DNA of 64,000 bases from Trichosphaerium sp. ATCC 40318 (Eukaryota > Protista > Tubulinea), in assembly GCA_038496445.1 (NCBI GenBank), contig JALMLS010000548.1, forward strand, positions 62,001-126,000, read 5' to 3'. The position numbers were made by a program, and so were the translations under genes. The notes below the pieces were generated by a model. The model searched no databases and was not told the origin of the DNA. It worked only from the letters and a program-made list of their open reading frames with translations. Every line of letters starts with the position of its first letter. Positions within the stretch are counted from its first letter, which is position 1. Below, piece after piece: positions 19,649 to 60,071 of this stretch.

Positions 19649-19732
19649 AGTTACAGCACCAAGTAGGGGTGTTGGTGTAATGACGGCGATGTTGACTTAA
19701 ATCACGCGCTAAGTGGCTGAGCTCCAAGTGCC

Positions 19733-21080: not shown

Positions 21081-21199
21081 CAAAACAATATCGACAATTT
21101 TAAAGTAAAAAAATGTATTTCACATACTTATGCTGTCGCTACATAGTTGGCCGTAGCACAATAATGTTGTGAAAGGTCGCAAGAACGGGATTGACCAAG

Positions 21200-24100
21200 C
21201 TTGCTTTTGTTTGGTTTGTGCCTTTCTATCACTAGTATCAACAACAGCGTAACGTATTGTTTTAACTACCAATACTTTAATAATTCAGTACAAATAAACG
21301 AGGCCTCAATTAGTTCAACCTACATCAATACCTACGAACGTACAACATGGAGAGTGAGTTTTCAGGGGGTACAAAGCTTTTTAGCCTGTTTTTAGCTCAC
21401 AGGCGTTGTAGTAGAGTTACAACCCGTCACAAGGCCTAAAACTCAATCCAAAGTTAATTTGGTACGTTTACTCTGTTTGGCCTAATACGTAACTATACTA
21501 ATAAGAATCAACGCTTACTTGTCATCGTAGGGAGACCCAGGGCTGTACCCAGCTAACTTTCAAGATCCTGATTACCGCAAACACTTCGTTCCATGGAATC
21601 AATTCGTTGCGCTTCTTTCCGACCTGACGCGCTCCGGTGAGCGCACAAAGAGCACTTATGGGGTGAGTACAATCCAAACTAGCGTATTTTAAGACATACT
21701 TATTTCCTACGCGTGTAGGGTAACGTAGGCGTTAATGAATCCAAGTTCCTCGCCCTAGTAGAGGATTCTGTCACAAATTTGAACTCGTTCTGCAACGAAA
21801 AGGTAGAAGATCTTAAAACTGATATTACGTTTCTACGACGTAAAGTGGAGCGTAAAGTAGGACCAGAAGAAAGACCTATGCGTACGAACAACGATGGCTT
21901 TTTTGGTTTTATTTCCTTGTTTGGGACTTACTATTCGACTAAACTACGCTTGCAGGTACTACCAAATTGGTGGTACAAGAGATAGATAGAGCTGCAGAGG
22001 CTATACTTACGCTAGACCAATTTGTTGGTCAAAACTTTATAATGATCATTTCGCTGGTCGCAAGGCATGACAAGATTATGGGTGTGCCTACAATTAAATA
22101 GTACGCCAAAGTTTTGTTGTTTGGCTTCGCACTAACGCTTCTCAGCTGGACAAATCGTCTAGAAAAGGAAGATTTTACAAATGTTATCTTCCCTGGATTG
22201 CTCGTAGGGTTATCCGATATAAGACGTGCTTTATCAGGTGATACTGATAAAAAGGCAGCTAAGGCTCTAAAGAGTGCTGTTATTCAAAGCCAGTACAAAT
22301 CTCAGAAATTTTGGTACGCGTAGAAGAGACAGCTAACGAGCTTTTGTTCATTTTTCTCGCACAGGGTTCGATTGCAAGATGTTATTAAGGCTAAAACTAT
22401 GGTTTTAAAATACGTGCCTTGCGTTAAAACTGGGTACAAAAAAGGTGCGTGTTTGGAATGGAAAAACAAAAAAATAACCAAACTCGTTCTCTTTCTTATA
22501 AAAAGTGTTGTTGCTCGTTAAAAGTAATATGCGATGGCGTACTGATAATGTGAAAAGGAAAATTCAATAAGGAGAAAGCATTTGATCAGCCAGATTATGA
22601 TACAAGGACTGTAGTGTTTTTTGATGATGATCAGTTATCAGTCTACAATTCTAGGTTAGCTGGTCAGGATTGTTACTCGTTTAACGTGGCATGGTACCAT
22701 CTTTTTATTGAGTAGCTTATAGCGTATTAAAGATGCTCTTAGGAAGCATGACGTGGAAAAAGAGGGCGAAAACGATTTTGTAATCGCACAGAGAAAAGCT
22801 CATTACACAACAGCGGGACAGAGTAATGTCGAGTCTATACCATTAAAATATAAGCAAGTGTCTCAGTTCTTAGGAGGTAGATGGCAATGGGAGTTACTAG
22901 GCGATAGACTTCTTGACAATAGTACGTATTGCTTTACCATCTCTACAAAACTTCCTTTTTTGCGCTAATACTTCGCTTTAGGTAAAATTACAGACGATCA
23001 GTACAAGAAAACATCTAAAGTAGCTGGTGAAGTACAGAAATTCATTCTAGGTGGAGGTTTAAAGCCTACAGTAAAAGTTATCTACAATCGGTAATGGTTT
23101 TCGCTATCTTTTTGAAGTACAGGTCTACAAGTTTACTAACGTACTGGTATAGTTCTGCATACTTTTTTACCAATTCAGACGATAGAATTGTACTCGATAC
23201 GAGCATTTCGATGGTTAAGGAAAAATCATACAGTGCGTCAATCTACTGTATGCTTTATGGCTTTTCTGACGATTTATTAAAGCCAAAAAGGGACAATGGA
23301 CAAGAGATATGACATCTCTACGCGAAGACCAAGAATGCGTAAGAATTTCTTTCAAGCTCTTTTAGAGGTTGCAGTGATAGTTCTTTTTGTTTATTTGGTT
23401 TTTATTAGTTGTTTCCATTTGCTACACTAGAAATGCGCTACGATGTGTCAAACCCACCAAAATGGGCCACAGATTTGCTTCAATCAGGTCTTCTCATTCT
23501 TGTAGACGATTTCTCAAAGTTTCTACATGGTGAGCGTGCAACTACTTGCAAACCAATCCTCTAAAAACGCGTTTAGGCAGTGCTATGTTCAATCCAAAGG
23601 CTCAAAATCAACCACATTGGTAAGCACTTTTTGGCTTAGTTGTAGGGCCTCTTTATCTTACCAGGGGACATAGGTTTGCTAACCCTGGTGCTCTATTACT
23701 TGGTGTAAAGGGTGGTAGATGGTACACGTTCGCAACTCAGCTTGCTAATGAAATGGGTATGTGATTATGTTTGGAAAGAAAAACAACATGCGAGCAGCTT
23801 CATTTCTATTTTTCTTACCTACGTTTAGCTATAAGAAGGAATACACATGCGCCAATAAGTATATCACCGCCACCTATGAATTCATCTCCTAGAGAACGCA
23901 TACGGTGTACGTACTGACAACAAACCAACTGTTTGTTTTACCATCTGCATGAAAACCCTATTGTCTTACTCGCTCACTCATGTAATAATAGCTGGATCTA
24001 AAGTAGCTCCTGTAAGTATAAGAGAAAGTAGTGCTCCAGTGGATTCAAAACGCTTGCAGCAAAATATACGTATAGAACCTAAAACGTTCTTTGCAAATGA

Positions 24101-24622
24101 AAGGTAGTTTTTTTGTCACTTATTTTTTAATTACTTCTCTCTAGGACTATGTTGCAATGGGTTAATAGTGTAGTACTTCTTGCTACAGTTGGTCTAGCAC
24201 TTGTTTCACTTGGAAACAGTGGTGCTCGGATAGCAGGTAAGTGTCATACGCAATGACAAAGGAAATATTTTACAAGTTTTTTTGAGTACTTACACCACAT
24301 GCAAAGGTTTCATTCTTGGTCCAGTTTCTATCATTTTTGCAATTTATGCACTAGTTATCTACCATATTCGTAGACGTGCTATTCGTGCAAGGAGGAATAC
24401 AAACGCTTATGACGATCGTATAGGACCTTACGTTTTAGTTCCAATACTTATTGTACGAATGGTTGTCTTTTACTTGTTCTCGCTAATGATTTTTGTTAGA
24501 TCGCCATTATTGTCTCTGGTGTATTTTCAGCACTAGAATCAGGGGTAAGTCACAAAGAAATAATTTACTCTTACAATGTACTAACGTTTTTTTGATAGAC
24601 AAACCTCGCTTCTGCATTTTAA
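21200..24622 (+). CDS. Vacuolar transporter chaperone subunit (SPX + VTC/TTM tunnel + DUF202 three-TM), probably non-catalytic Vtc2/Vtc3-like
   Basis: RIEPKTFFANERTMLQW, YHIRRRAIRARRNTNAYDDRIGP, DDFSKFLHG, PTVKVIYNRSAYF, DRIVLDTSISMVKE and FPFATLEMRY; N-terminal SPX-like helices. Start codon not located; TAA at 24620-24622. Confidence 0.88.
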
Positions 24623-25244
24623 ATTAACTATTTGCGCTTCGCAGCTGTAACATAAATAAAAAGGCCTTGAAATGGATTTTTACGACTTTTCTCACCATCC
24701 GTTTCCAGCTATTGGCAATGATTTAAATACATATGTTGCTCTACAGTAGACATTTTTGGAAATGCGCAGTATTTACGAGACAAAAACCTGAACAAATATG
24801 CCAAAATTATGAGTTTTCTGAAATACCGAAATGTTTCAGAACCCAGTGGAGTTGCGACCATCAGCCAATGTAGGGTACCTTCACATACTCGTGTGCAAAT
24901 CTTTACAAACCACTTTTTATTGTGTTTGGTTTTCTCTTGCTTTAAAATAAGTTTGCAATCTGCTTTCTACCAGATCCATCAGTCATCTTTACCTTACTTT
25001 ACTTTCTTAAATAAACAAACTTTGGGGCTTTGGCTATATGGATCTTTTTGTACATAAATATTTTTTGTGGCAATCAGGCTTTGCTGGACCATGTCATATA
25101 TCAGCTTTCTCGAGGCTCCACAAACACAAGGGAGGAGCTGAGGAGGAGACAATACTTGTAAAATAGAACTTGTTACGGACCGTCAAAGCGAATCTTGACC
25201 AATCGGGTAAAGTAATAGTAAAAAATACGCTTGACAGAGCCCTA

Positions 25245-27367
25245 ATGGCTTCGTTTTCGTATTACATACCTGTTTTGGCTTTTTTGGTAGTGTGCGTTGC
25301 GTCTAAAGACGTTACAGGTACATACAGTAAGTATTCTGACACTAAAACGTTACAGTTGATTTTACTTCGCCAATAAGATATTGGGACGGTTTTGGGGTAC
25401 TGAATTGAACACAACGAAGCGTGGCACTATCTAAATCAAACACTAGCTAAACTACGTTGAAACGGCCCAAACGCTAAACTATAGTGCATGGCAACAAGAT
25501 TACGGCGGTTTTAGTATAATGTCGTCCGATGATAGAGCAAAAGTAATGGAACTTTTCTTTGGCAAAGACGGCTTACGTCCAGGTTAGTTAAAGCCAGCCT
25601 GCTGTTACTAGACAGATATATTGTAATACCAATACACAGGTTTGTTAAAAATGTTTCTTGATCCATTCCACGAGGGATACACTATTGCTGGCACGTGATT
25701 TTTTTTTTGAAAAACTTTTCGAAAACACAACTTTTCTTACAACAATTCGTTTAGGTAACGATAATGGCGACCCTTATGTTTTGAATATGCCAGGTTTTGA
25801 TCATACTACAACGACCAAAAATCAGTTATTTCATGCGACAGAAGGGCTTAAAATGATCAAGGAATGGGGGTACGACAAAATTGTAATTGTTTACAATTCT
25901 CTGAATGCATACTGTTTAGGGGTACGCTCAAAGTACTAGCTGGAATGTACGGTCCAGCTGGCTGGGTAACTAAGGAGAGAAAAATAAGGTCCAGAGACCT
26001 TGATCCTGAACGTAAATATGAATGTGGAGAGTACCTAGTTTCTTGGGCAAAATTTCTGAAAACCAAAGGTCTACCAGTACATGCTATATCCCTTCACAAC
26101 GAAGGCGAGGATGGCGGGCCTGACCGATATCCTACACATCCAGGTTAGTCAGAAAGGAGCATGCATCGTTTCTCATGCCACTTAGGGCAAGACTATGACA
26201 TGTTTTGGCCTGCAGATCAGATTGTCGAGTTTATAGTATTCCTTCGTGATATGCTTGACAAAGATGACCTGGATGAAGTACTCATATCACCGGGTAGGCA
26301 ATAATAATTTGTTAAACTAACTAAGAGTAAAACAAGGCGAGACATCCAGTTTGGACCATTTGATTTCGTTTAACATTTCAACTGCAATTTCGTCAAACCC
26401 AGAAGCACTAAAGAATCTTGGTATTATAACCTCACATGGGTTCGGAAGTGCCGACAATAGGGCTATAAATATGTTGCGTGAAAAGAGTAATAAAGGAAAT
26501 AACCTTCATGCATGGGTATGTCCTCTGTATTGTGGTGATAACCTAACAATATCTGATCAGATTACTTCCGACTCTTTTGAGCAAATGACAGTCCCATTTA
26601 TTGAGGTAGGCCCTTGGCCACTATTTAGTTGGGTATATGCTAACCCTAACGGTAGCAATACATTTCACATATTTACACCAGCGGTATAAATGGACTTATT
26701 CCTTGGGCTACAATCCAGAGGTAGCGTTATTTTATCAGCGAGGTTTTTTGACTAACATTTGTTTAAGGCCATCTCAGGTACGATTCATAGTTAGAATCGC
26801 TCAATGACTAATTGTATAAAGTGGGTTAGAGGGGATCCTAATCCAGGTACTTGCGTAATTGTAAATGATGATGGCACCTTCAAAGTGACAAGGTACAACA
26901 TTCTCATAATTTTATCAAACTGTTATTATTGAGTAACAAAATTTTTAGAGGGTATTACTACTTGAAGCAGCTTTCTCGTGCAGGACAAGCAGGTACATAC
27001 TATTACTCTCCATACAGTGTAAACAATAAAAAACATCCACAAAGGTTCTACAGTTGTTTCTGTATCTCCTACAGATAACACTGTGGCAGCTTGGGCTTCT
27101 ACAAGTGATGCAGTAAAAGATTCATTCGTGATAGTAAATTCGGTATGTTAGCTTTTCTCTCTTTACTTGGTAACCTTCTCTTAGAACAACGCAACTGAAT
27201 CAATGAGTATTGCAATTAAAGGGTCTGGGGATACTTGGTTAGGCACACGAACTAATGACATGGGAACAGAAGAGTACTATGATATTGGCACTTTTGTTTC
27301 GAAGAATAATGTCCTGGTGTACAGTGCTCCACCGTTATCAGTTACAACCTTCTTTAGAAGTGACTAG
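25245..27367 (+). CDS. Secreted clan GH-A (GH30-like) TIM-barrel glycoside hydrolase with C-terminal beta-sandwich
   Basis: Signal peptide MASFSYYIPVLAFLVVCVAS; WDGFG, ELFFGKDGL, AISLHNEGE (acid/base NE), ITSHGFG, YYYLKQLSRAGQAG and YSAPPLSVTTFF ends. About 13 introns including a 10-nt micro-exon near 26768-26777. Confidence 0.75.
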
Positions 27368-31344: not shown

Positions 31345-34300
31345 CTACTTCTTTGTGATAGTAGATCCTGTCCTTCGTAATAGTTCTCTACATAAATATT
31401 AATTATACGTAAAACACATCATCAATCAAAATTATAATAAAAAATCGAAAAAATCACGTGCCTGAAGTCTCCAGAGGTCTTGGCTTCGTCCTCTTTCTTT
31501 TCTTTATTTGCACTTCGAAGTTTAACTGCGGCCGGATTGAATCCTCCGAATGGGTTCATACCCATTCCTCCACCGCCACCGCCACCACGTGATCCACGTG
31601 CAGCACGTAGTCTGGAACCAAATGATCCACCTGGTGGTAAATTAAGCTTCTTTTTTGGGCCAGCACGGTCATCTGACACAAGGTTGTGAAATTCTATTTA
31701 ACAAATAAGTATTATGGCTTGTACACAATTATCTATAAAGGTATTACCTGAAACAGACTTTGTAGGTAACGCCCTGGCTCCTCTTTGGTGTCCAGCGCGT
31801 TGAGATCTAAAGAAAGTAAGTTTGAGGTGTTTTTGTTGCTGAATAGTTTCTTGTCTTTTTAAAAAGTTGTTTTAAGGTACCTTCTAAGTAAGTAAGCATG
31901 ATCTCTGAGTAATGGTGCCTCGTCAATTCTAGATCCTCTTCGACCTCTTGTCTTTGTACCAATAATCTTCTTAGCTGCAACACCTCCTAGTACAATGTGA
32001 GATTACCAAACAAACACATCGTTTCATCAAAAACAAAACAAAAAAAAAAACTTACTGCGTCTAGTTGGTTGTGGTGGTCCGCTGCTTCCACCATCAGCTG
32101 AATCAAGCGCAGCGAAAAATTTAGTAGCACCAGAAAGAGCCTAATGGAACAAATAAGGTTCAACAACTAAGAAAAGAAATCGTACTTGTGCAATAGAAGC
32201 ATCCATTTCTCTTTCTGTTTCAGAATCTACTTCAGAACTCTTTGAAAGCTCTGAACGCTCTGAAAGTGTCTCACTATCGCTATCAGCAGCAAGAAGCTCT
32301 GATTCACGTTCTCTCTGCATCCTGAGCTGTTCTTTTTCTTGCCACTCATCACGTTCTCTGCGTTCTTTCTCCTACAAAAAAAATAAGCAAGGAAACAAGT
32401 TTCTTGTCTTTTCTTTGACGAAATCGATTCAGAGTGACGTACACGTTGAGCACGTAATCTCTCCTTTCGTAGTCTTTCTTGTTCCTTGATCTCATCTTGC
32501 TCTCTTTCGTACTCGGTACGTATTGTGGCTTGAGCATTCTGTGTTTTTTCTGAAATTGCATCCAGTTCTTTTTGTTTCTGTGCTTGCTCTCTTGCATAGG
32601 CGCCTTCTCGTTCCTTTCTTTCACGTTCTCGTAGTGCCATGAACTCTTGACGTTCACGTTCTTCAAGTTCCTTACGTGCTTTTTCTTCAGCAAGACGTTG
32701 GTCCTCGAGTTCTTTTTCACGTGCAAGCTTAGCAAGACGCTCACGCTCACGTTTTTCAGCAAGGTCACGTTTGAGCTTTTCTTCATCAGCCTTTTTCTTT
32801 GCAGCCCATCTAAACCAGCGTGTCAATAAATTCTATGTATATAGTGAGTAAGACATACCGTTTCCGACGTTCTTCTGCTTGTTGTTGCTTCAAACGTTTC
32901 TTCTCTTCTTCAGCTCTACAACAAAATTAAGAAACTTATGAGAAACAAATTATCGCTCAATCATACCTTCTTTCAGCAGCTGCAGCTTCCTCTTGTTGCT
33001 TCTTTTTCAAAGCCATACGTTGTCCAAAAGTCAACTTCTTCTTAGGTGCCGGAGCAGCTTCAACTGGTTTAGGCTCTTCTTTTGGTGCTACATCAATACG
33101 AAGAGGAGCAGGTTTTGCAACTTCCTTAACAACAGGTTTCGCTTCAACAACCTTTTCTGGTTCAGGTGTAGGCTCAGGGTCATCATCTGTAGCTAATCCC
33201 AAGCGTACTACTGTTGTTGATTGAACAGTATCAGAGATGGCTTGAAGCTCACGGTCTTTTTCTTCTTGCTCTCTTTCATAAGCCTCTTGAAGCTCACGAC
33301 GTTCTCGTTCTCTTAAGGCTTCAAACTGAGCACGTTCTCTCTCTTCCTGGGCTTTACGTTCGCGTTCTTCAGCAAGACGTTGTTCCTCAAGCTCTTTTTC
33401 AAGTGCAAGCTTAGCAAGACGCTCACGTTCACGTTTTTCAGCAAGGTCACGTTTGAGCTTTTCTTCATCTGCCTTTTTCTTCGCAGCCCATCTAAACATC
33501 CCGTAAGTAAAACAACTATTAGCATCACAGATTAATCTTACCGTTTTTTACGCTCTTCTGCTTGTTGTTGCTTCAAACGCTTCTTCTCTTCCTCTGCTCT
33601 ACGTAATTGTTTAATATTTTGAATCGTATACACGTGAAGATTATCATACCTTCTCTCAGCAGCTGCAGCTTCCTCTTGTTGCTTCTTTTTCAAAGCCATA
33701 CGTTGTCCGAAAGTCAACTTCTTCTTTGGAGCTGGAGCAGGTTCTGGTTCTGGTTCTGGTTTGGCTTCAACAACAGGTGCTGGTGTTGGCTCTGGTTCGG
33801 GTTCCTGAGGAGCTTGTACAGGCTCTGGTTCTGGTGTTGGCTCCACCTCGCCAGCAGTGGTAGATTGAACAGCATCAGAGATAGCAGCAAGTTCACGTTC
33901 TCGTTCTTCTTGAGCACGAATCTCAGCTTGACGAGCTTCTTCAATCTCTTTTTGACGAACTGCTTCGAATGCTTGTCGCTCACGCTCTTCTTGCTCAAGT
34001 CTAAGACGTTCAGTCTCTTCTTCTTGGCGTTTAAGTTCAGCAGCGATACGATCGCGCTCTTCTTGAGCCTTACGCTCTTTCTCAGCAGCTTCACGTTTGA
34101 TCTTTTCTTCTTGTTCTTTCTTCTTTGCAGCCCATCTAATTATTAAAAAGTTAATCTTTTTTACTTTTCGTTTTCAATAAAATCTACATACCTTCTTTTA
34201 CGCTCAGCTGCAGCTTCAGCTTTCTTTCTCTTGGCTTCTTCAGCTGCTCTAAGAAAACAATTAATAAATCACTGATGTCAGTAGGGAATTTGTGTACCTT

Positions 34301-37300
34301 CTTTCAGCGGCTGCAGCTTCCTCTTGTTGTTTCTTTTTCAAAGCCATACGTTGTCCGAAAGTCAACTTCTTCTTTGGAGCAGGTTCTGGTTCTGGCTCTG
34401 GTTTGGCTTCAACAACAGGCTCTGGTGTTGGCTCAGGTGTTGCCACTGGCTCTGGTTCTGGTTCTTTAGTGGCTTCAACAACAGGTGCGGATTCTTCGGC
34501 TGGTGGCGCAGTAGTCGATTGAACAGCATCAGAGATGGCAGCAAGTTCACGTTCACGTTCTTCTTGAGCACGAATCTCAGCTTGACGAGCTTCTTCAATC
34601 TCTTTTTGACGAACTGCTTCGAATGCTTGTCGCTCACGCTCTTCTTGCTCAAGTCTAAGACGTTCAGTCTCTTCTTCTTGGCGTTTAAGTTCAGCAGCGA
34701 TACGATCACGCTCTTCTTGAGCTTTGCGCTCTTTCTCAGCAGCTTCACGTTTGATCTTTTCTTCCTGTTCTTTCTTCTTTGCAGCCCATCTAAATACTAT
34801 GTCAAAACATTATCAGTATATATTTTCTGTACCGTTTCCGACGTTCTTCTGCTTGTTGTTGCTTCAAACGTTTCTTCTCTTCTTCAGCTCTACAACAAAA
34901 TTAAGAAACTTATGAGAAACAAATTATCGCTCAATCATACCTTCTCTCAGCAGCTGCAGCTTCCTCTTGTTGCTTCTTTTTCAAAGCCATACGTTGTCCG
35001 AAAGTCAACTTCTTCTTTGGTGCCGGTGCTGGCTCTGGTTTAGGTTCTGGCTTAACTTCTGCAACTGGTGCTGGCTCTGGTTTTGTTTCGACAACAGGTT
35101 CAGGTTTCGCTTCTACTACTGGTTCTGGTTTTGGTTCAGGTGTAGCTTCAACAACCTCTGCAAGTTCAGGTTTATCATCAACAGGGGTTGGAGTAGGTTC
35201 TACTGCTTGAACAGGTTCTTCAGCAGGCTCAGATACTGGTTCCGTGACTTCCCCAGCAGTGGTAGATTGAACCGCATTTGAAATAGCAGCAAGTTCGCGT
35301 TCACGTTCTTCTTGAGCACGAATCTCAGCTTGACGGGCTTCTTCGATTTCTCGTTGGCGAACAGCTTCGAACTCTTGTCGCTCACGCTCTTCTTGCTCAA
35401 GTCGAAGACGTTCAGTCTCTTCTTCTTGGCGTTTAAGTTCAGCAGCAACACGATCACGCTCTTCTTGAGCCTTACGTTCTTTCTCAGCAGCTTCACGTTT
35501 GATACGTTCTTCTTCCTCTTTTTGTTTTTGAGCCCACCTTCGTCGACGTTCTTCGGCCTTTTGTTGCCTCAATCGCTTTTTCTCTTCTTCAGCTCTAAAG
35601 TAAAATTAGAACAAAAAGGAAAGTATTTAAGAGTATCGTACCTTCTCTCAGCGGCTGCAGCTTCCTCTTGTTGCTTCTTTTTCAAAGCCATGCGTTGACC
35701 GAAAGTCAACTTCTTCTTTGGAGCTGGAGCTGGTTCTGGTTTTGTTTCAACAGGAGCAGGTGTTGGTTCAGGTTTAGGTTCTTCTTTAGCTTCCTCAACT
35801 GGAGCTGGCTCTGCTGCTACCTCAACAGGTTCAGGTGTAGGTTCGGGTTTCGTCTCTACTGGCTCAGGCTTAGTCTCCTCAACAGGTTGTGGAGTAGGCT
35901 CTGCTACAACAGGTTCTGGCTCAGAAGTGGCTTCAACAGGTTTAGCTGCCTCAGTCTCTTGTGGTTCATGTGATTCTGTTGCTTCGATGGATTGAGTTTC
36001 TTCAACAGGTTGTGGGGATGTAGATTGAACGGCATTTGAAATAGCTGCAAGTTCACGTTCACGTTCTTCTTGAGCACGAATTTCGGCTTGACGAGCTTCT
36101 TCAATTTCTCGTTGACGAACAGCTTCAAACTCTTGTCGCTCACGCTCTTCTTGCTCAAGTCTAAGACGCTCTATCTCTTCTTCTTGACGTTTAAGTTCAG
36201 CAGCAACGCGATCACGCTCTTCTTGAGCTTTACGTTCTTTCTCAGCAGCTTCACGTTTGATACGTTCTTCTTCTTCTTTTTGTTTTTGAGCCCATCTAGT
36301 ACAAAATTAGTAATTTCACCTTGTCAAAATAATAAAATCAGCAATACCTTCTTTTACGCTCAGCTGCAGCTTCAGCTTTCTTTCTCTTGGCTTCTTCTGC
36401 AGCTCTAAAATATAAATTAAAAAACTTCAAAAGTAGCACGTGAAGATTATTCATACCTTCTTTCAGCGGCTGCAGCTTCCTCTTGTTGTTTCTTTTTCAA
36501 AGCCATACGTTGTCCAAAAGTCAACTTCTTCTTTGGTGCTGGAGCTGGCTCTGGTTTTGTTTCAACAGGAGCAGGTTTAGGCTCTTCTTTAGCTTCCTCA
36601 ACTGGAGCTGGCTCTGGTTTAGGTTCTGGCTTAACTTCTGTAACTGGAGCAGGCTCTGGTTTTGCCTCAACAACAGGCGCAGGGTTCTCATCTTTAGCTA
36701 CCATAACTGGAGCTGGCTCTGGTGTTGCCTCAACAACAGGTGTCACATCTTCAGTTGCAGGTTTTGCTTCCTCTGGGTCAGGCTTAACCTCTTCAGGTTG
36801 TGGAGTAGGTTCTGTAGGTTTTTCTGGAGCTTGGGCTTCAACGGTTGGTTCAGTATTAGCCTCAACAAGAGCAGGTTCCTTTGTTGTTTCAGTAACATCT
36901 TTTTCATCGACAACTGCTTCCACTGATGGCTCTTCTGCTGTTGGTTCCTTTGGTTGAGGTTCAGGTTCAGAGACAGGTTCTGTGATTTCTGGTTCGTCTG
37001 ATACTTCTTGTGTAACAGCTTTAACTGGCTCGGATGGTGTTTCAAGAGGTTCAGTAGCAACGGGCTCTGTTTTCGCTTCAGCTGGTTTCGGATCCTCAGT
37101 AGAAACTGTTGAATCTGTAGCTGGAACTTGTTCAGGTTCTTCGACTGGCTCTGCTTCTGGTTCTTTAACGGGTTCTGGCACTTCCTCAGGTTCAGGCTCG
37201 TCCACCTTATCAGAAACAGTAGCGTCAGTTTTCTCAACTACGACTAATTCTACTTCCTTTGATGGAGCTACAGTTTGCTCAACACTGCAAGAGAAAACAA

Positions 37301-40300
37301 GTTAGAAACGATGTACCGAACTGTATGCTTCCGTACGGTTTATCATCTTCTTCATCTATATGTTCTGGTATGAATTCGACAACAGCATCCGTTTCAGCAA
37401 CAAAAGGTGCAGGTATAGCTTCATGTAATTCATGGTGATCGATTGTATCAAGTTCAACAATGACATCCAGTTCTAATGCATTTTCTTTAGATTCATGAGT
37501 TTCAGTTGGAAACTGTGGTGATTTGACAGCGTTAAAATACGCCACGTGTTGAACACTTGAAGGAGGTTCTTGGACTTCTTGAGTACCTTGAGCAATAGGT
37601 TCTTCAGCTTTCTCAACAGGTTTTGGCTCTTCAATTGGTGTTGCTTCTTCAACAGCCTCAGTTTCTACTGTAGTTGTTTTAGGTTCATGACTTTCAACTG
37701 GGAACTTAGGCGATTTGATAGCGTCATAGTACGCCACATGTTGAACACTTGAAGGAGGTTCTTTAACTTCTTGGGTACCTTGTGTAGGTTCCGTAGTTTT
37801 TTCAACAGTTTGAGGTGCTTCAACGACTTCTTCCTTAGTTGATTGTTCTACCGGCGCTTTAAGTTCGTGAGTTTCAGTCGGGAACTTTGGTGATTTGACA
37901 GCGTTGAAATACGCTACATGTTGCACGCTTGAAGGAGGTTCTTGAATCTCTTGAGTACCTGGAACAACTGGTTCTTGGGTTTCTTCAGCTTGTGCTTCAG
38001 TTGGTTTCTCAACAGGTTTTGGCTCTTCAATTGGTGTCGCTTCTTCAACAGCCTTGGTTTCTAATGCAATTGTTTTAGATTCATGTAATTCTAATGGGAA
38101 CTTTGGCGATTTGATAGCGTTGTAGTATGACACGTGCTGAACTGTTGAAGGTGGTTCTTGAATTTCTTGAGTACCTTGAACAATAGGTTCTTCAACTTCT
38201 TCACTAGGCTTTGTAGCTTCAACAGTTGTTTCTACTGGAGTCGGTTTAGGTTCATGCGATTCTGTTGGGAATTTTGGTGATTTGATGGCGTTGAAGTATG
38301 CCACGTGTTGAACCGTAGATGGAGGTTGGTCAAGATTGCTGGTACCTTCTGCTTCTTTGATTGGTTCTTCTGTAACCGATGGTTCAGTGGCTTCTTGTTT
38401 ATCTGCAACGGGTTCGGCAATAGCTGTTTCTTGTTCTACAGGTACTGATTTAATTTCGTGCGTTTCATCAAAGAACTTTGGAGATTTGATTGCGTTGTAG
38501 AATAAGATGTGTTGAACACTTGAAGGTGGAACTGGTTTTGTTGTTTGAACTTCGTTGGTACCTTTTTCAGGTTGTTCTTGAGATACAACTGGTGCAAGTG
38601 GTTCTGAGACAACTTCTTCTTGTTGAGGTTCTATTGCAACAGATTTAGGTTCTTCATGACTTTCAACTGGGAACTTTGGAGATTTTGTTGCGTTGTAGAA
38701 TAGAACGTGTTGAACTGTTGAAGGTGGCAGCGCTTGAGCTTGAGGAGTACCTTGAACAGGTTCTTCGGATGCCTTCTCAACAGGTTGAGCTTCTTCCGAT
38801 ACAACATCTTCAACGACTGGTTCTACAGGAATAGCCTGAGGTTCAGCAGATTCTACTGGCGCTGGAGGTTCGTGAGTTTCGGTTGGGAACTTTGGAGATT
38901 TGATAGCATTGAAGTACGCCACGTGCTGGACGTTCGAGATAGGTTCACCTATTTGAGTACCTTGAACAGGTTCTTGAGATTTTTCCACTGGTACTACAGT
39001 TTCTTCTTTCTCTGGTTCTAATGGAGTTGATTTAGGTTCATGCATTTCAGCTGGAAATTGTGGTGATTTGACAGCGTTGAAGTACACCACGTGTTGAACG
39101 CTTGAAGGAGGTTCTTGAATTTCTTGAGTACCTTGAGCAGTAGGTTCTGAAACTTTTTCAACAGGTTTCGTTGCTTCTACAGGCGCAGCTTCTTTGGCAA
39201 CAATCGCGACGTCGGTTTCTACTGGACTCGGTTTAGGTTCATGAGTTTCAGATGGGAACTTTGGCGATTTGACTGCGTTGAAGTACGCCACGTGTTGAAC
39301 GCTTGATGGAGGCACTTGAATCTCTTGAGTACCTTGTGAAGGCTCTTCAAACTTTTCAGTAGGTCGTGGTGATTCTTCAACTGGCTCTTGAACAACTTCT
39401 TGTTTTTCTGCAGGTTGTATTGGCGCTTGAAGTTCGTGAGTTTCTGTTGGAAACCGTGGTGATTTGATAGCGGCATAGTACGCCACGTGTTGGACATTCG
39501 AAAGCGGTTCGCGTATTTGAGTACCTTGCGAAGCCTCTTGATCTTTCTCATCAACTACTATTTCTTCCTTCTTTGATTGTTGTTCTACTGGAGCTGAGTT
39601 AGCTTCATGGGCATCAGATGGAAATTGAGGTGATTTAGTTGTGTCGCAATAAGAAATATGCTGAACACTTGAAAATGGCTTTGGCGGTTGAGTTTCGTTT
39701 GTACCTTGAACAACAGGTTCTTCAGCCTTTTCTACAGGTTTTGGCTCTTCGATTGGTGTTGCTTCTTTAACAGCCTCAGTTTCTACTGTAGTTGTTTTAG
39801 GTTCATGCGATTCGGTTGGGAACTTTGGCGATTTGACAGCGTTGTAGTATGCCACGTGCTGAACACTTGATGGTGGTGCTTGAATTTCTTGAGTACCTTG
39901 ATTGCTCGAGGTAACCTCTTTAGGTTCAATACTTGGTACGTCTTTAGCAATCGGTTCAGAAACTTCGCCTGTCGCCTTTTCTTCAGTTGATAATGGTTCA
40001 ACCTTATGAACTTCTGTAGGGAACTTTGGCGCCTTTACTGTGTTATAATATGCCACATGTTGAACGCTTGAAAATTGTGTTTCTTTAGGCTGAGATTCAG
40101 CTTTTTCAGCTTCATTCAAATGTAAATTATCAGCAGTTTCTACCTTGTTCTCTGGAACAGCCTAATCGAAGATTTTAGAGAGAGCAGAAAAGAAAGAAAA
40201 AAATAGGAAACAATGTATTGTTAAGTGGGAGTACCTTCTCAGGATTTGATGCTTCTGGTACAGTTGTGCTTTGAACTTCTGTTGGGAATTTAGGCGAGGT

Positions 40301-43300
40301 TACAGCGCTGTAGTATGTGACGTGTTGAACTGCGGAAGGTGGTCCGCTTAAAATTTGTGTAGGTGCCTGTGGCTGCTTCGATGTTGTTGGTGTTTCCAAT
40401 ACAACTTCGGGTTTCACTGGCATAGATACTACTTCTTGTTGTTCTACAGGTACTGATTTAGGTTCATGTGCCTCATCAAAGAACTTTGGAGATTTGATTG
40501 CGTTGTAGAATAAGATGTGTTGAACACTTGAAGGTGGAACTGGTTTTGTTGATTGAACTTCGTTGGTACCTTTTTCAGGTTGTTCTTGAGATACAACTGG
40601 TACAATTGGTTCTGAGACAACTTCTTCTTGTTGAGGTTGAGGTTCTATTGCAACAGATTTAGGTTCTTCATGGCTCTCAACTGGGAACTTTGGAGATTTT
40701 GTTGCGTTGTAGAATAGAACGTGTTGAACTGTTGAAGGCGGCAGTGCTTGAACTTGAGGAGTACCTTGAACAGGTTCTTCGGCCGCCTGTTGTGGTACTT
40801 CGATTGGAGAAACTTCTGCTTCTTTAACAACAGGTTCAGCTTTCGGTTGTTCTATTGGCAGCGCTTTAGGTTCATGGCTTTCAGTTGGAAACTTCGGCGA
40901 TTTGACAGCGTTGAAGTACACCACATGTTGAACGCTTGATGGTGGTATTTGAGCTTCTTGGGTACCTTGAACAACAGGTTCTTCCACTTTCTCTGCAGTT
41001 ACCGGTGCTTCGATTGTAGAAACTTCTTCGCCGCCTTGTTGCTTGATTGCAGGCTCAAGTTCTGTTGCTGCTACAGCTGGTTTAGGTGTATGCAATTCTG
41101 TTGGAAATTGAGGCGATTTAGTTGCATTGAAATAAGCAACATGCCGAACGCTTGAAAGAGGATGCAAAGATTGTTCTTGATGGTTACCTTGAGCAACAGG
41201 TTCTGGAACTTTTTCGGCGACAGCTTTTTGAACTTCACTTTGAACAGGCGCTTCAGTTGGTTCGTCGTTCTGTTTTGGTTCTACCGCAGTTGATTTAGAT
41301 TCATGACTTTCAGTTGGAAACTTTGGTGATTTGACTGCGTTGAAGTACGCCACGTGTTGAGTGCTTGAAGGAGGTTCTTGGACTTCTTGAGTACCTTGAA
41401 CAATAGGTTCTTCAGCTTTTTCAATTGTTTCAACTTCTACTTCGGCAGTTTTTGTAGCATCAACGACTGGCGCTTCGACAGGTGCAGTTTCTTTGAGAAC
41501 CTCGGTTTCTACTGGATTCTGTTTAGGTTCATGACTTTCAGATGGAAACTGTGGCGATTTGACAGCGTTGAAATATGTCACGTGTTGAACGCTTGAAGGC
41601 GGCTTCTGAACCTCTTGGGTACCTTCGGCAGGGGAATCATTATCCGCAGTAGCAACTTTTTGCTTCTGCTCTTTTACGTCTGCTAGAGCCTCAATGGTCT
41701 CTTCTTTGTTCACTTCATGAACTTGAGATACTACCTGTTCTGGAGCATCAGAGGAAACAGTTTCAGCGGCCTTGTCAACAACACTTTCGTCGGTAGAATC
41801 TTGCGACTTTAAAGTGGGTTTTGACTCGGGCTCAACAACTGTTTGCTCCGCTGCATCCTCTACAGGCGTTGGAGTAACCTCTGAAGGCTCTTGAACTTCG
41901 TTTGTTGGCTCCGCGGATTCGATATTAATTTTCGATTCTCCGGATGTAACTTCCGTAGTTTGCGTCTCCTCTGGTTGTTTTTCGGCTGGTTCTTCAACCT
42001 TTGAAGAGGATTCTGGGTCGTCCTTGTTTAGGGAGGGTTCTTTAGAAGTTTCATTTTGTGAAGTCTCTTCTTTTGGTTTTTCAGCTTTTTCTGAATTACT
42101 TTCGTCATTTGAAGCCTTTGGTTCTTCAACAACTGTAGGTTCTTTAGAATCCTTCTTATTTACATCTTCTTCTACTGATTGAACCGCTTCAGAAATCAAA
42201 GAAAGCCTTTGCTCTCTTTCAAGTTGTTTTCTTTTAACAGCTTCACGCGCTGCTTGTCTTTGTTGTTCTTGAAGTTTTGCGTATGCTTTTCTCTCCCTTT
42301 CTACTTGTTCTCTACGAAGACGTTGTTGTTCTTCGTCTTGTTGCTTAAGCTTAAGTTTAAGAAGCCTTGCTTCTTCCTCAGCTTGTAATTCTTTTTTCCT
42401 TTTTTCTTCAGCAACACGGGCAACACGCTCTCTTTCTAGGCGTTCTTTTTCTGCCCATCTAATTTATGACGTGAGTATAATAACATAACAACTAACAATC
42501 GATTTTTTTTAAAAAACAAGAAACTGCAATACTTCCGAAGAGCTCTTCAAGACTTCTTTTTTCTGAAAATATTATGTGAATTTTTTTTTTCCGCTTCGTA
42601 TGCGGCTTGTGTTTTTCTAATTTTTTTTTTTCGTACCTTCTCCTCCTTTCTGCTGATTTCTCTTCACGAATACGCTGTCTTTCAGCTTCAGCTCTGTAAT
42701 AGTACACCGTCAGTATAATTTAGTTATTTTTTTCGTAAAAACAAGAAAATTAATCTTACTTTTTCCTTTTATCTTCTTCCGCTTTTTGTAGGCGTATCTT
42801 TTCTGCTCTTATCTCAGCAAATGATCTCTTCTTCTTTAAAGCCTTTTGATCGCGTTATTAAATTAAAAAAAAAGCAAAAAAAAAATAATAATTCGATAAA
42901 TATCGTCGTAAGGGTACCTTAGACTCGCGATCTTTTGCTGCTTTTTTCTCTCGTTCTTTTCTATCGCGAATTTGCTTCTTTATACGTTCTTCTTCTTGTT
43001 TCTTCTTAGCAATCCATCTATATCGATCACGTGTTAACATAATTGTTAACTAAACATGTAATTGCGCTTTTTGAAAATTTTTGAATATTTGTCACGTGCG
43101 CCACGTGATTTTTTGGTGAATTTCTTTTTTCGCCTCAAAAAAAAAAAAAAGGATCAAAAACGTGGTATTACCTCTTCTCGCGTTCCTCTTTTTCCTTTTG
43201 GACACGTTTATTACGCTCATCGAGTGCTCTAGTAAAAATATTAGTACCCTCCGATAACCTTTTTTGAAATCGAGAAGCAGTAAACTTCAACGCACTTTAA

Positions 43301-45098
43301 CTTTCGCTCCTTTTCCTCTTTAGCTCTTCGTCGTCTGTCAGCCATACGAGCAAAAAATCCAAGCCCTTCTCCAGACTTGCTTGCAGCTTTTGGTTGAGCC
43401 GGCTTCGGATCATTCTTTCGCGATCGTGGTTCGTTGCCACGCTTTGAGTTTGTCTTTTCAGGCTTGTCTTCGACTTTTTTATCGACATTCTGGTTTTCGG
43501 TTTTGTCTGGTGAAGAAGCCTCTTGCGGTTCATCTACCTTGTCTTTAGGACGCTTTGGTTGCACTTTCTTTGCTCCCTTTTTAGGTGCTGGTTTCACTTT
43601 ACGCTTACTATTTCAGCGCATTAGTAACTCAAATCCAAGGAAAAAATGCATTTGTGCCTTTTGCCCTCTGTAGCTTTATTGTTATCACCAGCAACTGTTC
43701 TTCTAGAAGACTTTTTACGAACCAATGCCCTAGTAGACTTGCTTCTACCAGGACCACTCCTTGCAGCCACTTGGTCAGCTAAAGTGCGTGTAGATTTGGC
43801 GCGCTGTAGTAAACAATGTAAGTTTCTTAACCACTATCAAAACTTTTGCATACAACAGAATTTCTGGTACGAAGAGATCTCTCAGAGCGCTTGCTTGGCG
43901 ACTTCGATCGAGTAGTAGTTAATATTTCTGCATTGTTTGAAGCCTTTGAACGCGTTGTAATAACTGTCTCTCGCTTTGGTGATTTGTTTCTGCTTTTTTC
44001 ACGTTTGGGAGATATAGACCGCCTCTTCTTTGGTGTGACTGGTTGTGGCACTACATGAGGTTAATATAAATCACCTTGTGATCAACTTTATGGCAAAGGT
44101 GGTAGAAACTTATGACAAAAACGCACGTGATTTTCTACGTGTTCTTTCTCCCGCTCTTTGTGCAGTCTTGAACTCAAAAGCAGCAGGTTGTTTTTTTCTT
44201 TGCCTCGAAGGACTCTTTTTTTCGCGTTAATGATAAATATAATGCAACACACGCATACCTTGTTCCTCCACCTTTAAAAATACGTTAACCTTGGTACATA
44301 AAACAACAAACATTGTACGTACTTTGACATTTCATCCTCGGCCTTTGAAGGAGACCAGGTTCTAAACAATCTAATTAACACCACTCCGGCTATTTGATGA
44401 AAAAAAAAAAATAAACAGAAAAGGCAACAACTAATCATCATATGATCCACCTCTATCGGCACGTACTGTCTTCTAGAAGGAACGCGAGTCTTCTTCTTCG
44501 CACTCGGTGGTCGTTCTGATGCTTTTTTTGTGCGTTTAACAGGTGGTTTTGCCTGTTCTTTAGGCTGTCCGTTTTCTTCTGGCTTCTTTTTGCCTTCAGA
44601 TGTTCCGTTGGTCTTCTTTTCGGTCGGTTTACCTTTACCCTTGTCCTCAACCTTGTTACCACCCTTTTCAGCCTTATTGCTACCCCACCAGAGGTTCGCA
44701 AAACTGCCACTAAGCACAAAGGTAAACTTCCACAAATTTATGGTTCTTTGATGCAATTGGTGCTACGTACGATTTTCTAGTGGTACGTTTTTCATTTTTA
44801 GGCTGACTTTTGGTCCATGATGAAAACCAACCAGAGTTTTGTTCTGTGGTCTCTTTACCACCCTTACGCCTTGTAAAAATAGTTAATTAAAACAGTTTTG
44901 GGTTCATTCCGGATTTTCTGTGCACAAACCTGGATGCGTCTAGAAAATGAAGTTAGATGACGGAAATTAGCATAAACTGGGAAGTAGTCATCATATTAAA
45001 GAGTTTTGGCTTTTTTTTGTAATTCACCTTTAGAACAGGCGCAAAAAAAAAACACGTGATTTTGGTTAGGGAATGCATAACGTACTTTGATCGGCCAT
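31345..45098 (-). CDS. Giant (roughly 3,500-4,000 aa) repetitive E/P/K/V-rich protein with two tandem repeat families, charged helices and a C-terminal DFRxxL motif; putative cytoskeletal scaffold/spring
   Basis: Minus-strand exons splice in frame from a basic/SP-rich N-terminus through the 674-aa and 946-aa exons and six KKKLTFGQRMALKKK modules to ...AVKLRSA...GDFRELLRRTGSTITKK* (TAG 31345-31347). The 5' start (ATG 45096-45098, MADQ) is tentative. Confidence 0.75.
32790..36545 (-). repeat. Six tandem multi-exon modules: PEVK-like linker - KKKLTFGQRMALKKKQQEEAAAAERR | RAxEE.. | WA[QA]KKK..E/R/K helix
   Basis: Core motif at about 36520, 35710, 35005, 34365, 33715 and 33035. The intron at 32917-32968 is identical to that at 34890-34941. 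Confidence 0.95.
37490..41620 (-). repeat. 21 copies of a ~25-aa motif (P)PSSVQHVxY[FY]NAxKSP[KQ]FPxExHE, spaced about 55-70 aa apart
   Basis: Counted in the ORF translations: 7 copies in 40175..42199 and 14 in 37279..40119. Confidence 0.95.
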
Positions 45099-46065: not shown

Positions 46066-48240
46066 TTATTTAGTCGATTTTTGTTTTGGTTTTTGTTCTA
46101 CAAACCGCATTTGTGCAGCCAATGCTACGTGATCAGAACAAAAGTAAGCATTTGGAAAGAACTTTGCAGGAGCGACACGTTCGCTTGTCATCTTCTCTAA
46201 TATCTTTACAGGTTGAAGTGCATTACCAAACCATATGTAATCCAAGCAACCTATAAACAATCCGTGAGAAACAGGGAATCTTGGAGTTTTTGGCTGACCT
46301 TTGAAGTGTCCACAAATGTTTGTGTATGGTTCTTTTATGCATGCGTAACAACTTTCTAAAGATAAGTTGTGTTTGAGTGTAGAAATATCGACGCGTCTCA
46401 TAGCGCTTAGGTGTTGTCTACAATCACGGTGGCGCTTAGGAATGGACCCATTTCGCAAAAAGCTGAAACAAAATTAGCAAGGACAAGTGCTGGGTTTGGT
46501 TCTATTTTACGTACTCATACACTGAGGAACCAGGTTTACTATTGAAATCTCCAACAATTACATAAGGATAATTATACTTGGTAAGCACTTTTTCTACAGC
46601 TTTTGCAAGATGTAACGACTAAGAGAGTTAATTTACTAATTGGGTAGTTTTTTTTCTAAAAGTGCAGTTGTGCTAGAATGAGTAATCGTACTTGTGCTAA
46701 TTTAATATCTGGTTCAGCAGGATTCCAGTATAAGTGAGTTGAAATAAACCACATTCTTCTTTTATTATCCTTGAACTCTTTTATCTTGTGTAAGCACAGT
46801 GTAACAATTGCATGAAGACTTAAACCAAAAAAAAAAAAAAAGTAAAAAATCCACAGTTGTTGTGCGTACCTTGTTTATCTTTATCAAAAGCTGATTTATC
46901 ATGTACAGAAAACCCTACATTTATACTATATCCCTCAGTAGGGTCAACATCACCTTCTTTATCATCTTCCTTAAACTCCAATAGCAACATAATTCCTACA
47001 TTGTTTTTTCTGTATCTGCTAGATCCAAGCCTGTATGTTTTTACATAGTTACATATATCATCGTAATTTAAGTCTATACGTCGTAAAGCACGAAATCTAA
47101 CAACACTTGAGTAAGAAGACGAATCCAAAAAAGGAAGGATAAAAATTGACAACGACTTGTAAGCTTGGACGTACTTTTTCTTGTTGTAGAATATAGCAGA
47201 TCCATCTGAGGCCATTTTTGGCCGTTTTTTGTATACACTATCATATGTATTACCGAGTTCGCCTTTTAACTCCTTGTATGCGCTTGGTTCAACCTCCTGA
47301 AGACCAACCAAATCGCATGTGTAGTGTCGAAGTTTGGTGATTAGCTTATCTCTACGATACCCCCTAAATTCATAAGTTAGGTTATTCTTGCAGCAAAATA
47401 CAAAGAATATGCAAAGAAAATTAGTGTACCATTTGAGAGCGTATGTTGGAGTGTACCAATAACGCTTTTTATCTGCATAAGAGCTTGCAAGTATATTGTA
47501 AGTCATAACAGTGAATCCTAGAAGTATATTAAACGCATTTAAAGGTAAAAAAATGACCAACAAAAAAAAATCAAATGTTAGATGACACCTGTCGCTGTTT
47601 TTCTATTCAACTAGTCCAATGCGCACCTCCTTTCTCTTGTAATTTAATTCCCTCTGGTTGTGGGTGATCTATCCAATCTCTATATGGCGTAGCCATAGCC
47701 TAGTTGTACGAGTAAACAATGACGCGTCACGGGGTTTTTTTTCACTTACTTCGCTGCCAACCCATATAAGGTGCGCGCTGTGATGTCTACAGTCTGGAAT
47801 AACGACCTCATATTTTATAACATAACCCACATCCTCTCGGAGAAAAGTGTACGACCTGTTTTGTGTTATTGTGTAAACTTACAACGCATTCGTACTCTTG
47901 TTCTGATAGGTCAATCCACTCCTCGTTCTCCAACAGTTGTTTTTTGACAACAGAATTATTTGTTAGACTTCTTTTCTTAACATCGAAAGTAGGACCTTTA
48001 TACCTTTGGGGTCACTCTTAGCGATGTTTAAACTGCTACGTACCAATGAACAATTGCATTTTTATTTAAAGCGTGCTCAACGCGTGGAGTGAATGTATCA
48101 CCCACTCTCGCATGTTTGATAAGCCCAAAAACGCGAATCGACTTTTTCTGATCTTGCCAAACGCTTTTACTCAGGTTTGAGTCCACTTCGCTTGCGAGCG
48201 AAGCCATACCAAGTTCCTCAGTGCCGAAGACGCTTCCCAT
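46066..48240 (-). CDS. CCR4/PDE12/angel-family EEP (endonuclease/exonuclease/phosphatase) deadenylase-like protein
   Basis: FTVMTYNILA, YALKW.YRR..LI, DLVGLQEV, DGSAIFY, ISTHLYWNP...IKLAQ, IVGDFNS, CLDYIWF and FPN...SDHVAL. The N-terminal YTFLREDVGYVIKYEV extension resembles PDE12/plant CCR4; MGSVFG may be myristoylated. Confidence 0.9.
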
Positions 48241-58087: not shown

Positions 58088-59335
58088 CTAATCTACAGGT
58101 GCCGTCAAAACGCAAATATTCTCTTTAGTTTTTTTGCCGAGTTCATAAATAATCTGTGCTTGTAGCTGCCCATTTTCATACCACTTCTTATGTACACCAT
58201 GCTTTTTACCATTAACATAAGAACCTTGCCTTAGCAGAATACCATCATGGTACCACTGCTTATATTCGCCATTTTTTTTACCATTAACAAAAGCAGCTGT
58301 TACTTGAAGTTGTTCATTTTCATGCCACTGTCTGCTAAGACCACTTTGCTTACCATCAACAAACTTACAATGTACATGAAGTGTACCACTATAATACCAT
58401 TGTCTATGCTCTCCATTATTTTTACCATGAATATATGTACATTGTATTTGAAGTTGTCCATTCTCATACCAAGCCTTGAACTCACCATTTATCTTTCCAT
58501 CACTATAAACACATTGTTTACTGAGTCGTCCATTATCATACCAATGTGTAACCGCACCATTAGGTTTATCATCTGAAAACATACAGTCAATAGCAAGTTG
58601 TTCATTCCTATGCCATTTCTTATAGCTACCTTGTTTTTTACCATCAATGACTGTATACTGTAATCGAATTTGTCCATGTTTACGAAATGTAATGACCTCA
58701 CCGTTCTCTAGACCATCAATGAACATACGCTCCATAGCAAGTCGTCCATTTTTATGCCATGTTTTATGTTCGCCGACCTTTTTACCATGATTGTACATAC
58801 ACAGCACTTGAAGCTGTCCATTATTATGCCAACCCTTGAACTCACCATTTCTCTTTCCGTTAATGTAAACACATTGATTACTTAGTTGTCCGTTTTTATG
58901 CCATTCACTTCTTTGACCATTCTCTACATCATCAACAAACATTTGAAGGTATCGAAGTTGTCCATTATCAAACCAAATCCTAAACTCACCTGTTCTCTTA
59001 TCATCAACGTGTGTTGCCTTTATATAAACTTGTCCATTCTTATGCCATTGAGTGTACTTACCATGTTTCTTACCATTCAAAATAGGGTATTGAGCACTCA
59101 TCTCACCACTTGAGTACCAAGTCATCCAACTACCGTGTTTTTGGAGGTCGGCGTTGTAGTGTGTGTTGGTCGCTGCTCTTTTTGATAGCATATGAAACTT
59201 GCGAAATGTTTCTGGGTTGAAGGTGCACAAGTAACACTGAATATCAGTGGGAATGTCCAAGATGTTTTGAGATGAAGGTACAACACTTGTATTGGTGCGA
59301 CAGCACTTATTTGGGTGCGATGATGGTGACTGCAT
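58088..59335 (-). CDS. Intronless F-box-like + MORN-variant (MORN_2/YwqK-like) repeat protein
   Basis: ATG 59335; ILDIPTDIQCYLCTF (F-box-like), then about 14 tandem 24-aa repeats of the type GEFKGWHNNGQLQVLCMYNHGKKV; single open exon. Confidence 0.85.
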   Translation of the reverse strand: MQSPSSHPNKCCRTNTSVVPSSQNILDIPTDIQCYLCTFNPETFRKFHMLSKRAATNTHYNADLQKHGSWMTWYSSGEMSAQYPILNGKKHGKYTQWHKNGQVYIKATHVDDKRTGEFRIWFDNGQLRYLQMFVDDVENGQRSEWHKNGQLSNQCVYINGKRNGEFKGWHNNGQLQVLCMYNHGKKVGEHKTWHKNGRLAMERMFIDGLENGEVITFRKHGQIRLQYTVIDGKKQGSYKKWHRNEQLAIDCMFSDDKPNGAVTHWYDNGRLSKQCVYSDGKINGEFKAWYENGQLQIQCTYIHGKNNGEHRQWYYSGTLHVHCKFVDGKQSGLSRQWHENEQLQVTAAFVNGKKNGEYKQWYHDGILLRQGSYVNGKKHGVHKKWYENGQLQAQIIYELGKKTKENICVLTAPVD

Positions 59336-60071
59336 TGTTGGCGATCTACAAGAAGCTTGTGAGTCAGAAAAAAATACGAAAGCACGTGTTTTCAAAGTAT
59401 GAAACGCAAGAGTAAAACGGCGGTATTTGCGCAATTTACGAGTAAATTGAAAACAAAAGACTATGAGAACTCGCTACACAAAAAAAACCGTCAAAAGGCC
59501 GCAAAAAACGAAGCGCTGGCTTCTGCTCGGGCTGGAATCTCGTCCGATGATATAATTTTTAAGTCGGCTTAAGAAAACTAGAAAATGGCTCGCTTTTAGA
59601 GGTCCTTACGCTAAGGAATACTATTTGCCGCGGTTTTAGAGTGAGATCGATGGTGGTTTTAGTATGCGCCTTTTTACGCTTATATAACGGCTACAACGCG
59701 TCTAGCGTACCTTTTTAGACGGTTTAACGTAAAATATCGACTAAATACGCTTTTTGTTCTTAAATCCTGCTTTACTGGTGAATGTGAGTGAAGGTAGGTA
59801 TTGCAATGGCCAAAGAAAGTCTCGTAGAAGCTTAGGGACTTTTTCTTCGTACCGCCAAATTTTTTTACCGCCTCGTCACGTTTGTTGCGTTGGTTTTATA
59901 CAGGTACATTGTACTTCAACACAAAGCAATGTAAAGTGCGCGTAATGCGAGTACGTTTAAAATTTTTAATAATGACCACGTGGGATTACACAACTCTTGG
60001 TGAGATACTGTAAAGTAGGCTCAAATTTTTTTCGCTGAGGTAAAGACGTTGTGGCTTATGTATCTTCATCA

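Follow-up and report, generated by a model that had tools for sequence, protein, structure and literature searches.

Short motifs that recur many times in very long or disordered proteins have been described in several systems, among which the PEVK region of titin, nebulin, the microtubule-associated proteins tau, MAP2 and MAP4, the tails of the neurofilament proteins H and M, the LC8-binding arrays of ASCIZ and the repeat clusters of MDC1 come closest to the array described here. This array consists of 21 copies of a 25-residue motif and is part of a giant gene on the minus strand of a 64,000-nucleotide stretch of the genome of the amoeba Trichosphaerium sp. ATCC 40318 (contig JALMLS010000548.1, positions 62,001 to 126,000; hereafter the window, to which all coordinates without a contig name refer). 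The motif had been noticed in a first-pass annotation of the letters alone. It was followed up by pattern scans, profile searches and fold predictions, and both the searches and the predictions were made exon by exon.

The PEVK region of titin is, like the array, a disordered stretch of a giant modular protein that is rich in Pro, Glu, Val and Lys and composed of short imperfect repeats, and the array, too, is a plausible entropic tether. However, the array unit comprises 66 amino acids versus about 28, its aromatic, His-bearing core of 20-25 residues is absent from PEVK, and the amoeba protein has neither Ig nor Fn3 domains. The PPAK profile (PF02818) matched neither the exons nor single units, and the likeness to PEVK is compositional only. 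Nebulin also carries many short motifs in tandem (35 residues, Ser-Asp-x-x-Tyr-Lys) in a very long protein. In contrast to nebulin, the array is acidic rather than basic, has a variable and nearly double period and lacks a seven-unit super-repeat. The nebulin profile (PF00880) found no match in exons or single units, and the period of 56-76 residues and the isoelectric point (pI) of 4.7 are also at odds with membership in this family. Tau, MAP2 and MAP4 share with the array a conserved core of about 18 residues containing Ser and His, which lies in a disordered protein with less conserved inter-repeats, and the binding of tau is regulated by Ser phosphorylation. However, tau has three to five basic repeats of 31 residues, whereas the array has 21 acidic units of 66 residues, and the tubulin-binding repeat profile (PF00418) matched neither the exons at an expectation value (E) of up to 1 nor 20 single units at E<=10.

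The neurofilament H and M tails resemble the array in that Lys-Ser-Pro lies within an acidic sequence of tail-like character with much Glu, Lys, Pro and Val. Their repeats are, however, only 6-8 residues long and are attached to an intermediate-filament rod, while Lys-Ser-Pro makes up three residues of a 25-residue motif in the 66-residue array unit and its Pro is lost in a paralog; an intermediate-filament domain was found in none of the exons scanned. Many short docking motifs along a disordered chain are also a feature of the LC8-binding arrays in ASCIZ and of the MDC1 repeat clusters. By analogy and without homology, such multivalent linear-motif scaffolds would provide the mechanism that is proposed for the array below. 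LC8 ligands carry an anchor of the Thr-Gln-Thr type. This anchor is absent from the array, in which the Gln triplets are Thr-Gln-Glu and Val-Gln-His in nearly all copies, and the MDC1 motifs are not present in it either.

Conservation of the motif and relaxation of its spacers

A six-frame scan of the window with a pattern representing the first half of the motif detected exactly 21 copies, as had been counted before. All of them are on the minus strand (37492-41632), seven in the frame of one exon (exon A) and 14 in that of the following one (exon B), and none occurs elsewhere in the six frames; composition-preserving shuffles of the same protein gave a mean of 0.0005 copies. According to the pattern scan and the alignment, copies 1-7 with their spacers occupy positions 40268-41632 and copies 8-21 with their spacers positions 37492-40107. 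The 75-nucleotide cores of copies 1-7 start at 41528, 41300, 41087, 40871, 40667, 40463 and 40268, those of copies 8-14 at 40003, 39802, 39604, 39433, 39238, 39037 and 38869, and those of copies 15-21 at 38653, 38455, 38251, 38080, 37864, 37684 and 37492.

The alignment revealed a conserved element of about 33 residues, which consists of Gly-Thr-Gln-Glu, a few residues, the core PPSSVQHVAYFNAVKSPKFP and x-Glu-x-His-Glu. Four residues of the 25-residue core are the same in 21/21 copies, namely Ser at position 3, the first His, the Pro in Ser-Pro and the Phe. Ser-Pro-[Lys/Gln/Arg]-Phe, the Lys-Ser-Pro tripeptide and the second His are each found in 20/21 copies, which agrees with the invariant His, the near-invariant Lys-Ser-Pro-[Lys/Gln/Arg]-Phe and the usual second His of the first-pass annotation. 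The upstream Gly-Thr-Gln-Glu, which had been described as frequent, precedes 10 copies in its exact form and about 16 in a looser Gly-Thr form. The regularity of the spacing was likewise confirmed, but not the value of about 60 residues nor its constancy: the period is 66.2 +/- 5.5 residues (mean and standard deviation) with a range of 56-76 and is fairly regular rather than constant. Units 5-6 and 15-16, which are 95-96% identical in the core, show that at least one block of two units was duplicated recently; apart from this duplication, there is no super-repeat in the array. The spacers of 30-45 residues are acidic, rich in Pro, Glu, Val and Lys and tolerate substitutions and indels. Three aromatic residues, Val and His are present in each core, and the spacers are otherwise free of aromatics. 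The mean frequency of the top residue is 0.82 in core columns versus 0.47 in linker columns.

The array of 1,408 residues contains 15% Glu, 13% Pro, 12% Val and 7% Lys (48% for Pro, Glu, Val and Lys together) and is nearly devoid of Arg (0.3%), Cys, Met and Trp, with a pI of 4.7 and a net charge of about -126. An AlphaFold2 model of one unit, for which the 20 units served as alignment, reached a mean predicted local distance difference test score (pLDDT) of 60 and a predicted template modelling score (pTM) of 0.17, with a weak helix over the core. Three consecutive units were modelled with a pLDDT of 50 and a pTM of 0.10 and showed neither secondary structure nor contacts between cores. Judged from these models, the array looks like a disordered chain whose short conserved elements may become ordered on binding, and not like a folded repeat domain.

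Among the 21 cores, the proportion of replacement differences per site (pN) is 0.17 and that of silent differences (pS) is 0.60. Most core pairs are 65-90% identical at the DNA level, and the invariant residues are encoded by several synonymous codons. Since pS is high compared with pN and many synonymous codons are used, recent homogenisation does not explain the conservation of the core. A second line of evidence comes from contig C407 of the same assembly, which contains a 97% copy of window positions 39688-31204 and represents a haplotig or else a duplicate of very recent origin. Between the window and C407, the cores have 16 silent and 16 replacement differences (pN/pS 0.28), the upstream element five and three (pN/pS 0.17) and the linkers 10.5 and 29.5 (pN/pS 0.85); Fisher's test on these small counts gave p values of about 0.02-0.05. 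None of the four indels affects a core; three are located in linkers and the fourth in the upstream element. A ratio close to 1 on the motif codons, which had been named beforehand as evidence for homogenisation, was thus not observed, and the claim that the motif is kept while the linkers diverge holds. The comparison of the sequences indicates that the motif is under purifying selection and that the linkers are relaxed. Copy 10 (window 39604-39678; C407 8-91) is the most divergent one. In C407, Tyr replaces its otherwise invariant His and three further replacements are present, so that this copy holds four of the 15 replacement changes in the cores; by its sequence, it seems to be decaying.

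A paralog and the search for relatives

A profile search covering the organism's own 70-Mb assembly located the motif in three places only, the giant gene, C407 and a further gene on contig C22. The paralog on C22 has an open exon of 761 codons (L013:2992-5274) with seven copies of a 20-residue core, which are spaced by 70-91 residues. Although unalignable with those of the giant gene, its spacers likewise have a high content of Val, Pro, Glu, Ala and Lys. The 28 copies of both genes have in common, with few or no exceptions, Pro-Ser-[Ser/Thr]-Val-Gln-His-[Val/Ile], a pair of aromatic residues and Ser-x-Lys-[Phe/Tyr]-Pro. The presence of the same motif in two architectures with the spacers replaced would be expected for a portable docking module. 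None of the seven paralog copies has the Pro of the Ser-Pro site, a second His or Gly-Thr-Gln-Glu upstream of the core. Therefore, neither a Ser-Pro switch nor a two-His element is part of the shared core, and the two functional suggestions of the first-pass annotation, a phospho-switch at Ser-Pro and a His-dependent element sensitive to metal or pH, are both weakened. Upstream of the large exon of the paralog, candidate small exons (L013:2330-3030 on C22) offer a candidate hydrophobic or Met-Gly-x-x-x-Ser start. The latter resembles a myristoylation signal, and on this tentative gene model either start could tie the paralog to a membrane.

The bare pattern Ser-x-x-[Phe/Tyr] is found in 20/21 copies of the main gene and in 6/7 copies of the paralog, which is weak evidence given the shortness of the pattern. 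The shared Ser-x-x-Phe resembles the phospho-Ser-x-x-Phe ligands of tandem BRCT domains, and the main gene has Ser-Pro and Thr-Gln sites in addition; all of these serve as leads only. Four further candidates, judged by eye against consensus sequences, were dismissed as either unsupported or not conserved in the paralog, namely SH3-type Pro-x-x-Pro, EB1-type Ser-x-Ile-Pro, TRAF6-type Pro-x-Glu and SH2-type Tyr-x-Asn.

As had been stated in the first-pass annotation, the motif corresponds to no named repeat: Pfam returned no family for any exon at E<=1 and none above the cut-off for 20 single units at E<=10, and no known Pfam repeat that could speak against its novelty came to light. The Pfam entries Ets1 flank, MINAR1_N, LXG and DUF3113 appeared below their own cut-offs and inconsistently between units and were rejected. 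The motif profile had no match among the PDB sequences at E<=10. A word-based protein search with exon B (946 residues) and the paralog (748 residues) was also without a match, although a length filter limits the meaning of this result. Moreover, no relative was obtained from the ESM Atlas or from a scan of JGI metagenome contigs, and no match to the motif strings was present in full-text papers. The papers obtained from the literature on Physarum and connectin were all irrelevant. A full HMMER profile pass covered 1.84 billion protein cluster representatives, and its sole match, P0001, is a translated satellite repeat in which 13 profile positions were matched 15 times and was discarded as spurious. 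The organism's own proteins for both genes are also absent from the searched libraries, and close relatives may therefore simply be unsampled. With respect to public sequence data, the array is best read as an orphan that is apparently restricted to its lineage.

A proposed docking array and its alternatives

With a probability of roughly 0.55, the array is a multivalent series of linear motifs that serve in docking and are held apart by entropic acidic spacers, in a giant protein without a recognised domain. Each unit of about 66 residues would combine the conserved element of about 33 residues with an acidic spacer of 30-45 residues. Each core would act as a short linear binding motif that is shaped only on contact with a partner, while the acidic spacers would serve as a flexible tether between the cores. 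In this way, the array might hold many copies of one partner or, with high avidity, one oligomeric partner. Both the docking function and the multivalency are what we infer for the array. The interpretation given in the first-pass annotation is partly supported: the repeated binding element that it proposed fits the selection on the motif and the recurrence of the latter in a second gene with unrelated linkers. If a docking array is indeed present, it would represent a clean natural case of extreme multivalency, with 21 selectively maintained linear motifs on neutral, length-tolerant spacers. It would also provide a short, defined peptide with which a new pair of motif and domain could be sought in a eukaryotic lineage that has received little study, and the paralog marks the residues that matter, which are Ser-[Ser/Thr]-Val-Gln-His, the Tyr pair and Ser-x-Lys-Phe-Pro. 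If no partner exists, the protein would simply join the orphan repeat proteins that are common in protists. A more far-reaching scenario, which we consider improbable, would involve a novel docking motif together with its reader domain. Dozens of partner molecules would be recruited to the giant tether under the control of Ser phosphorylation and of protonation of the invariant His. The protein would then be a switchable scaffold, specific to this lineage, that serves the cortex or the cytoplasm, and the paralog would be a second version of it that is possibly anchored in the membrane.

Several points weigh against a docking array. A motif may also be conserved because it is needed for self-association or mechanics and not for docking, the disorder is a prediction from shallow alignments built of the repeats themselves, and the haplotype comparison is based on only about 30-40 substitutions per class. 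Moreover, the silent divergence between the window and C407 is higher in the cores (0.080) than in the linkers (0.037), which may mean that some gene conversion has occurred among the cores. The latter difference, together with the block duplication of units 5-6 and 15-16, also favours the view that the motif has no function and that the copies are alike by recent amplification or concerted evolution. However, this would hardly account for the pS of 0.60 versus a pN of 0.17 among cores that are mostly 65-90% identical in DNA, for the divergence of the linkers of the same units, which includes indels, or for the survival of the core in a paralog with unalignable spacers, and we regard it as very unlikely. 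The chance is smaller still that the protein is a precursor from which 21 similar peptides are released by cleavage. Conserved peptides between acidic spacers are the typical layout of such precursors, but the array contains a single dibasic pair in 1,406 residues and 0.3% Arg, no signal peptide was seen at the candidate start, and the same protein has long Glu/Arg/Lys helices that are typical of intracellular proteins. Both concerted evolution and a peptide precursor can be regarded as largely excluded.

Two further explanations assign a function to the motif and are weighed at low probability. In one of them, each motif would bind one subunit of actin or of a microtubule and the protein would run along the polymer as a ruler or side-binder in the manner of nebulin or tau. 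The fairly regular spacing of 66 +/- 5.5 residues would suit such a role, and the Glu/Arg/Lys helices and the basic motif array of the same protein are reminiscent of caldesmon-type filament-associated proteins. However, the period varies between 56 and 76 residues (70-91 in the paralog), there is no super-repeat beyond the one two-unit duplication, and no nebulin, tau/MAP or WH2 profile matched even at lax thresholds. Known side-binders of acidic filaments are basic, whereas the net charge of the array is about -126. The binding to actin or tubulin that had been envisaged before is thus unsupported, and a lattice-bound ruler appears doubtful. In the other explanation, the aromatic, His-bearing cores would bind each other weakly and the spacers would keep the chain extended, resulting in a network of an elastic or gel-like kind that pH or phosphorylation might tune and that would resemble FG nucleoporins or titin PEVK. 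Three aromatics, Val and His in each core amid aromatic-free spacers, the content of 48% Pro, Glu, Val and Lys and the predicted disorder are in line with stickers and spacers. Nevertheless, typical cohesive stickers are less specific than a 20-residue core in which at least eight positions are nearly fixed, the strongly negative net charge opposes condensation and, as weak evidence, the three-unit AlphaFold2 model lacks core-core contacts. Self-association of this kind is therefore considered unlikely.

The giant gene and its surroundings

The array region is protein-coding and belongs to a eukaryote, an amoeba, with short spliceosomal introns, and nothing points to human DNA. By chaining open minus-strand segments over short GT-AG introns, a multi-exon gene for a giant protein could be delineated at about 31425-45098, of which both ends are approximate. 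It consists of many exons with short introns between them, two of which harbour the array. The G+C content of the window is about 37%, with a richer block at 32-42 kb. The candidate start ATG at 45098 (minus strand) marks the candidate 5' end, and neither a signal peptide nor a hydrophobic start was seen at this position. The exons upstream of the array encode basic sequence with a high content of Ser, Lys and Arg and are followed by Glu/Arg/Lys-rich segments of the helix type. No Pfam domain was recognised in any of the tested exons of the gene (16 exon pieces scanned). The giant gene's upstream neighbour (46820-47563, minus strand) has a weak match to the endonuclease/exonuclease/phosphatase domain.

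Exon A (40235-42463, minus strand; upstream edge approximate) encodes a Glu/Arg/Lys-rich helix-type segment, about 190 residues of acidic low-complexity sequence and motif copies 1-7. Its open frame comprises 762 codons (42463-40178), and the donor GT is located at 40234-40233. The following GT-AG intron of 73 nucleotides (40162-40234, minus strand) keeps the frame. It is independently supported because its removal restores a spacing of 64 residues between copies 7 and 8, which would be 88 residues apart without splicing. Exon B (37337-40161, minus strand; donor at 37336) has an open frame of 960 codons (40161-37282) and encodes copies 8-21 and a short acidic tail. It is followed by an intron of 52 nucleotides (37285-37336, minus strand) with a GTACGG donor, a CTAAC branch-like site and a CAG acceptor. 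This intron splits a Pro codon, the third base of which comes from the next exon.

Downstream of the motif array, the giant gene contains a second, unrelated repeat array of six units (32960-37284, minus strand). Each unit is composed of a Glu/Arg/Lys helix of about 110 residues, a Pro/Glu spacer and a basic motif of 27 residues and is spliced from three exons, including a micro-exon of 57 nucleotides. The basic motif is identical at the protein level in 6/6 copies, which differ on average by 3.9 of 81 nucleotides, all silently, and a search of this genome confined it to the giant gene. A reading of the second array as WH2 (PF02205) was rejected, as the 40-residue segment around the basic motif matched no family at E<=10.

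The alignment with C407 extends beyond the gene. This contig matches window positions 39688-31204 in reverse and 16782-26492 in forward orientation, both with 97-98% identity. Because the two matches run in opposite directions, one of the contigs carries a 9.7-kb stretch in inverted orientation relative to the gene. In C407, this stretch is bracketed by inverted copies of an element of 370-570 bp, of which the window has a single copy (14290-14859). Possible explanations are an inversion between haplotypes, a mobile element bounded by long terminal inverted repeats, and a misassembly. Elsewhere in the window, an open frame of 448 codons on the minus strand (58088-59434) encodes a MORN-repeat protein (MORN_2, E 5e-40).

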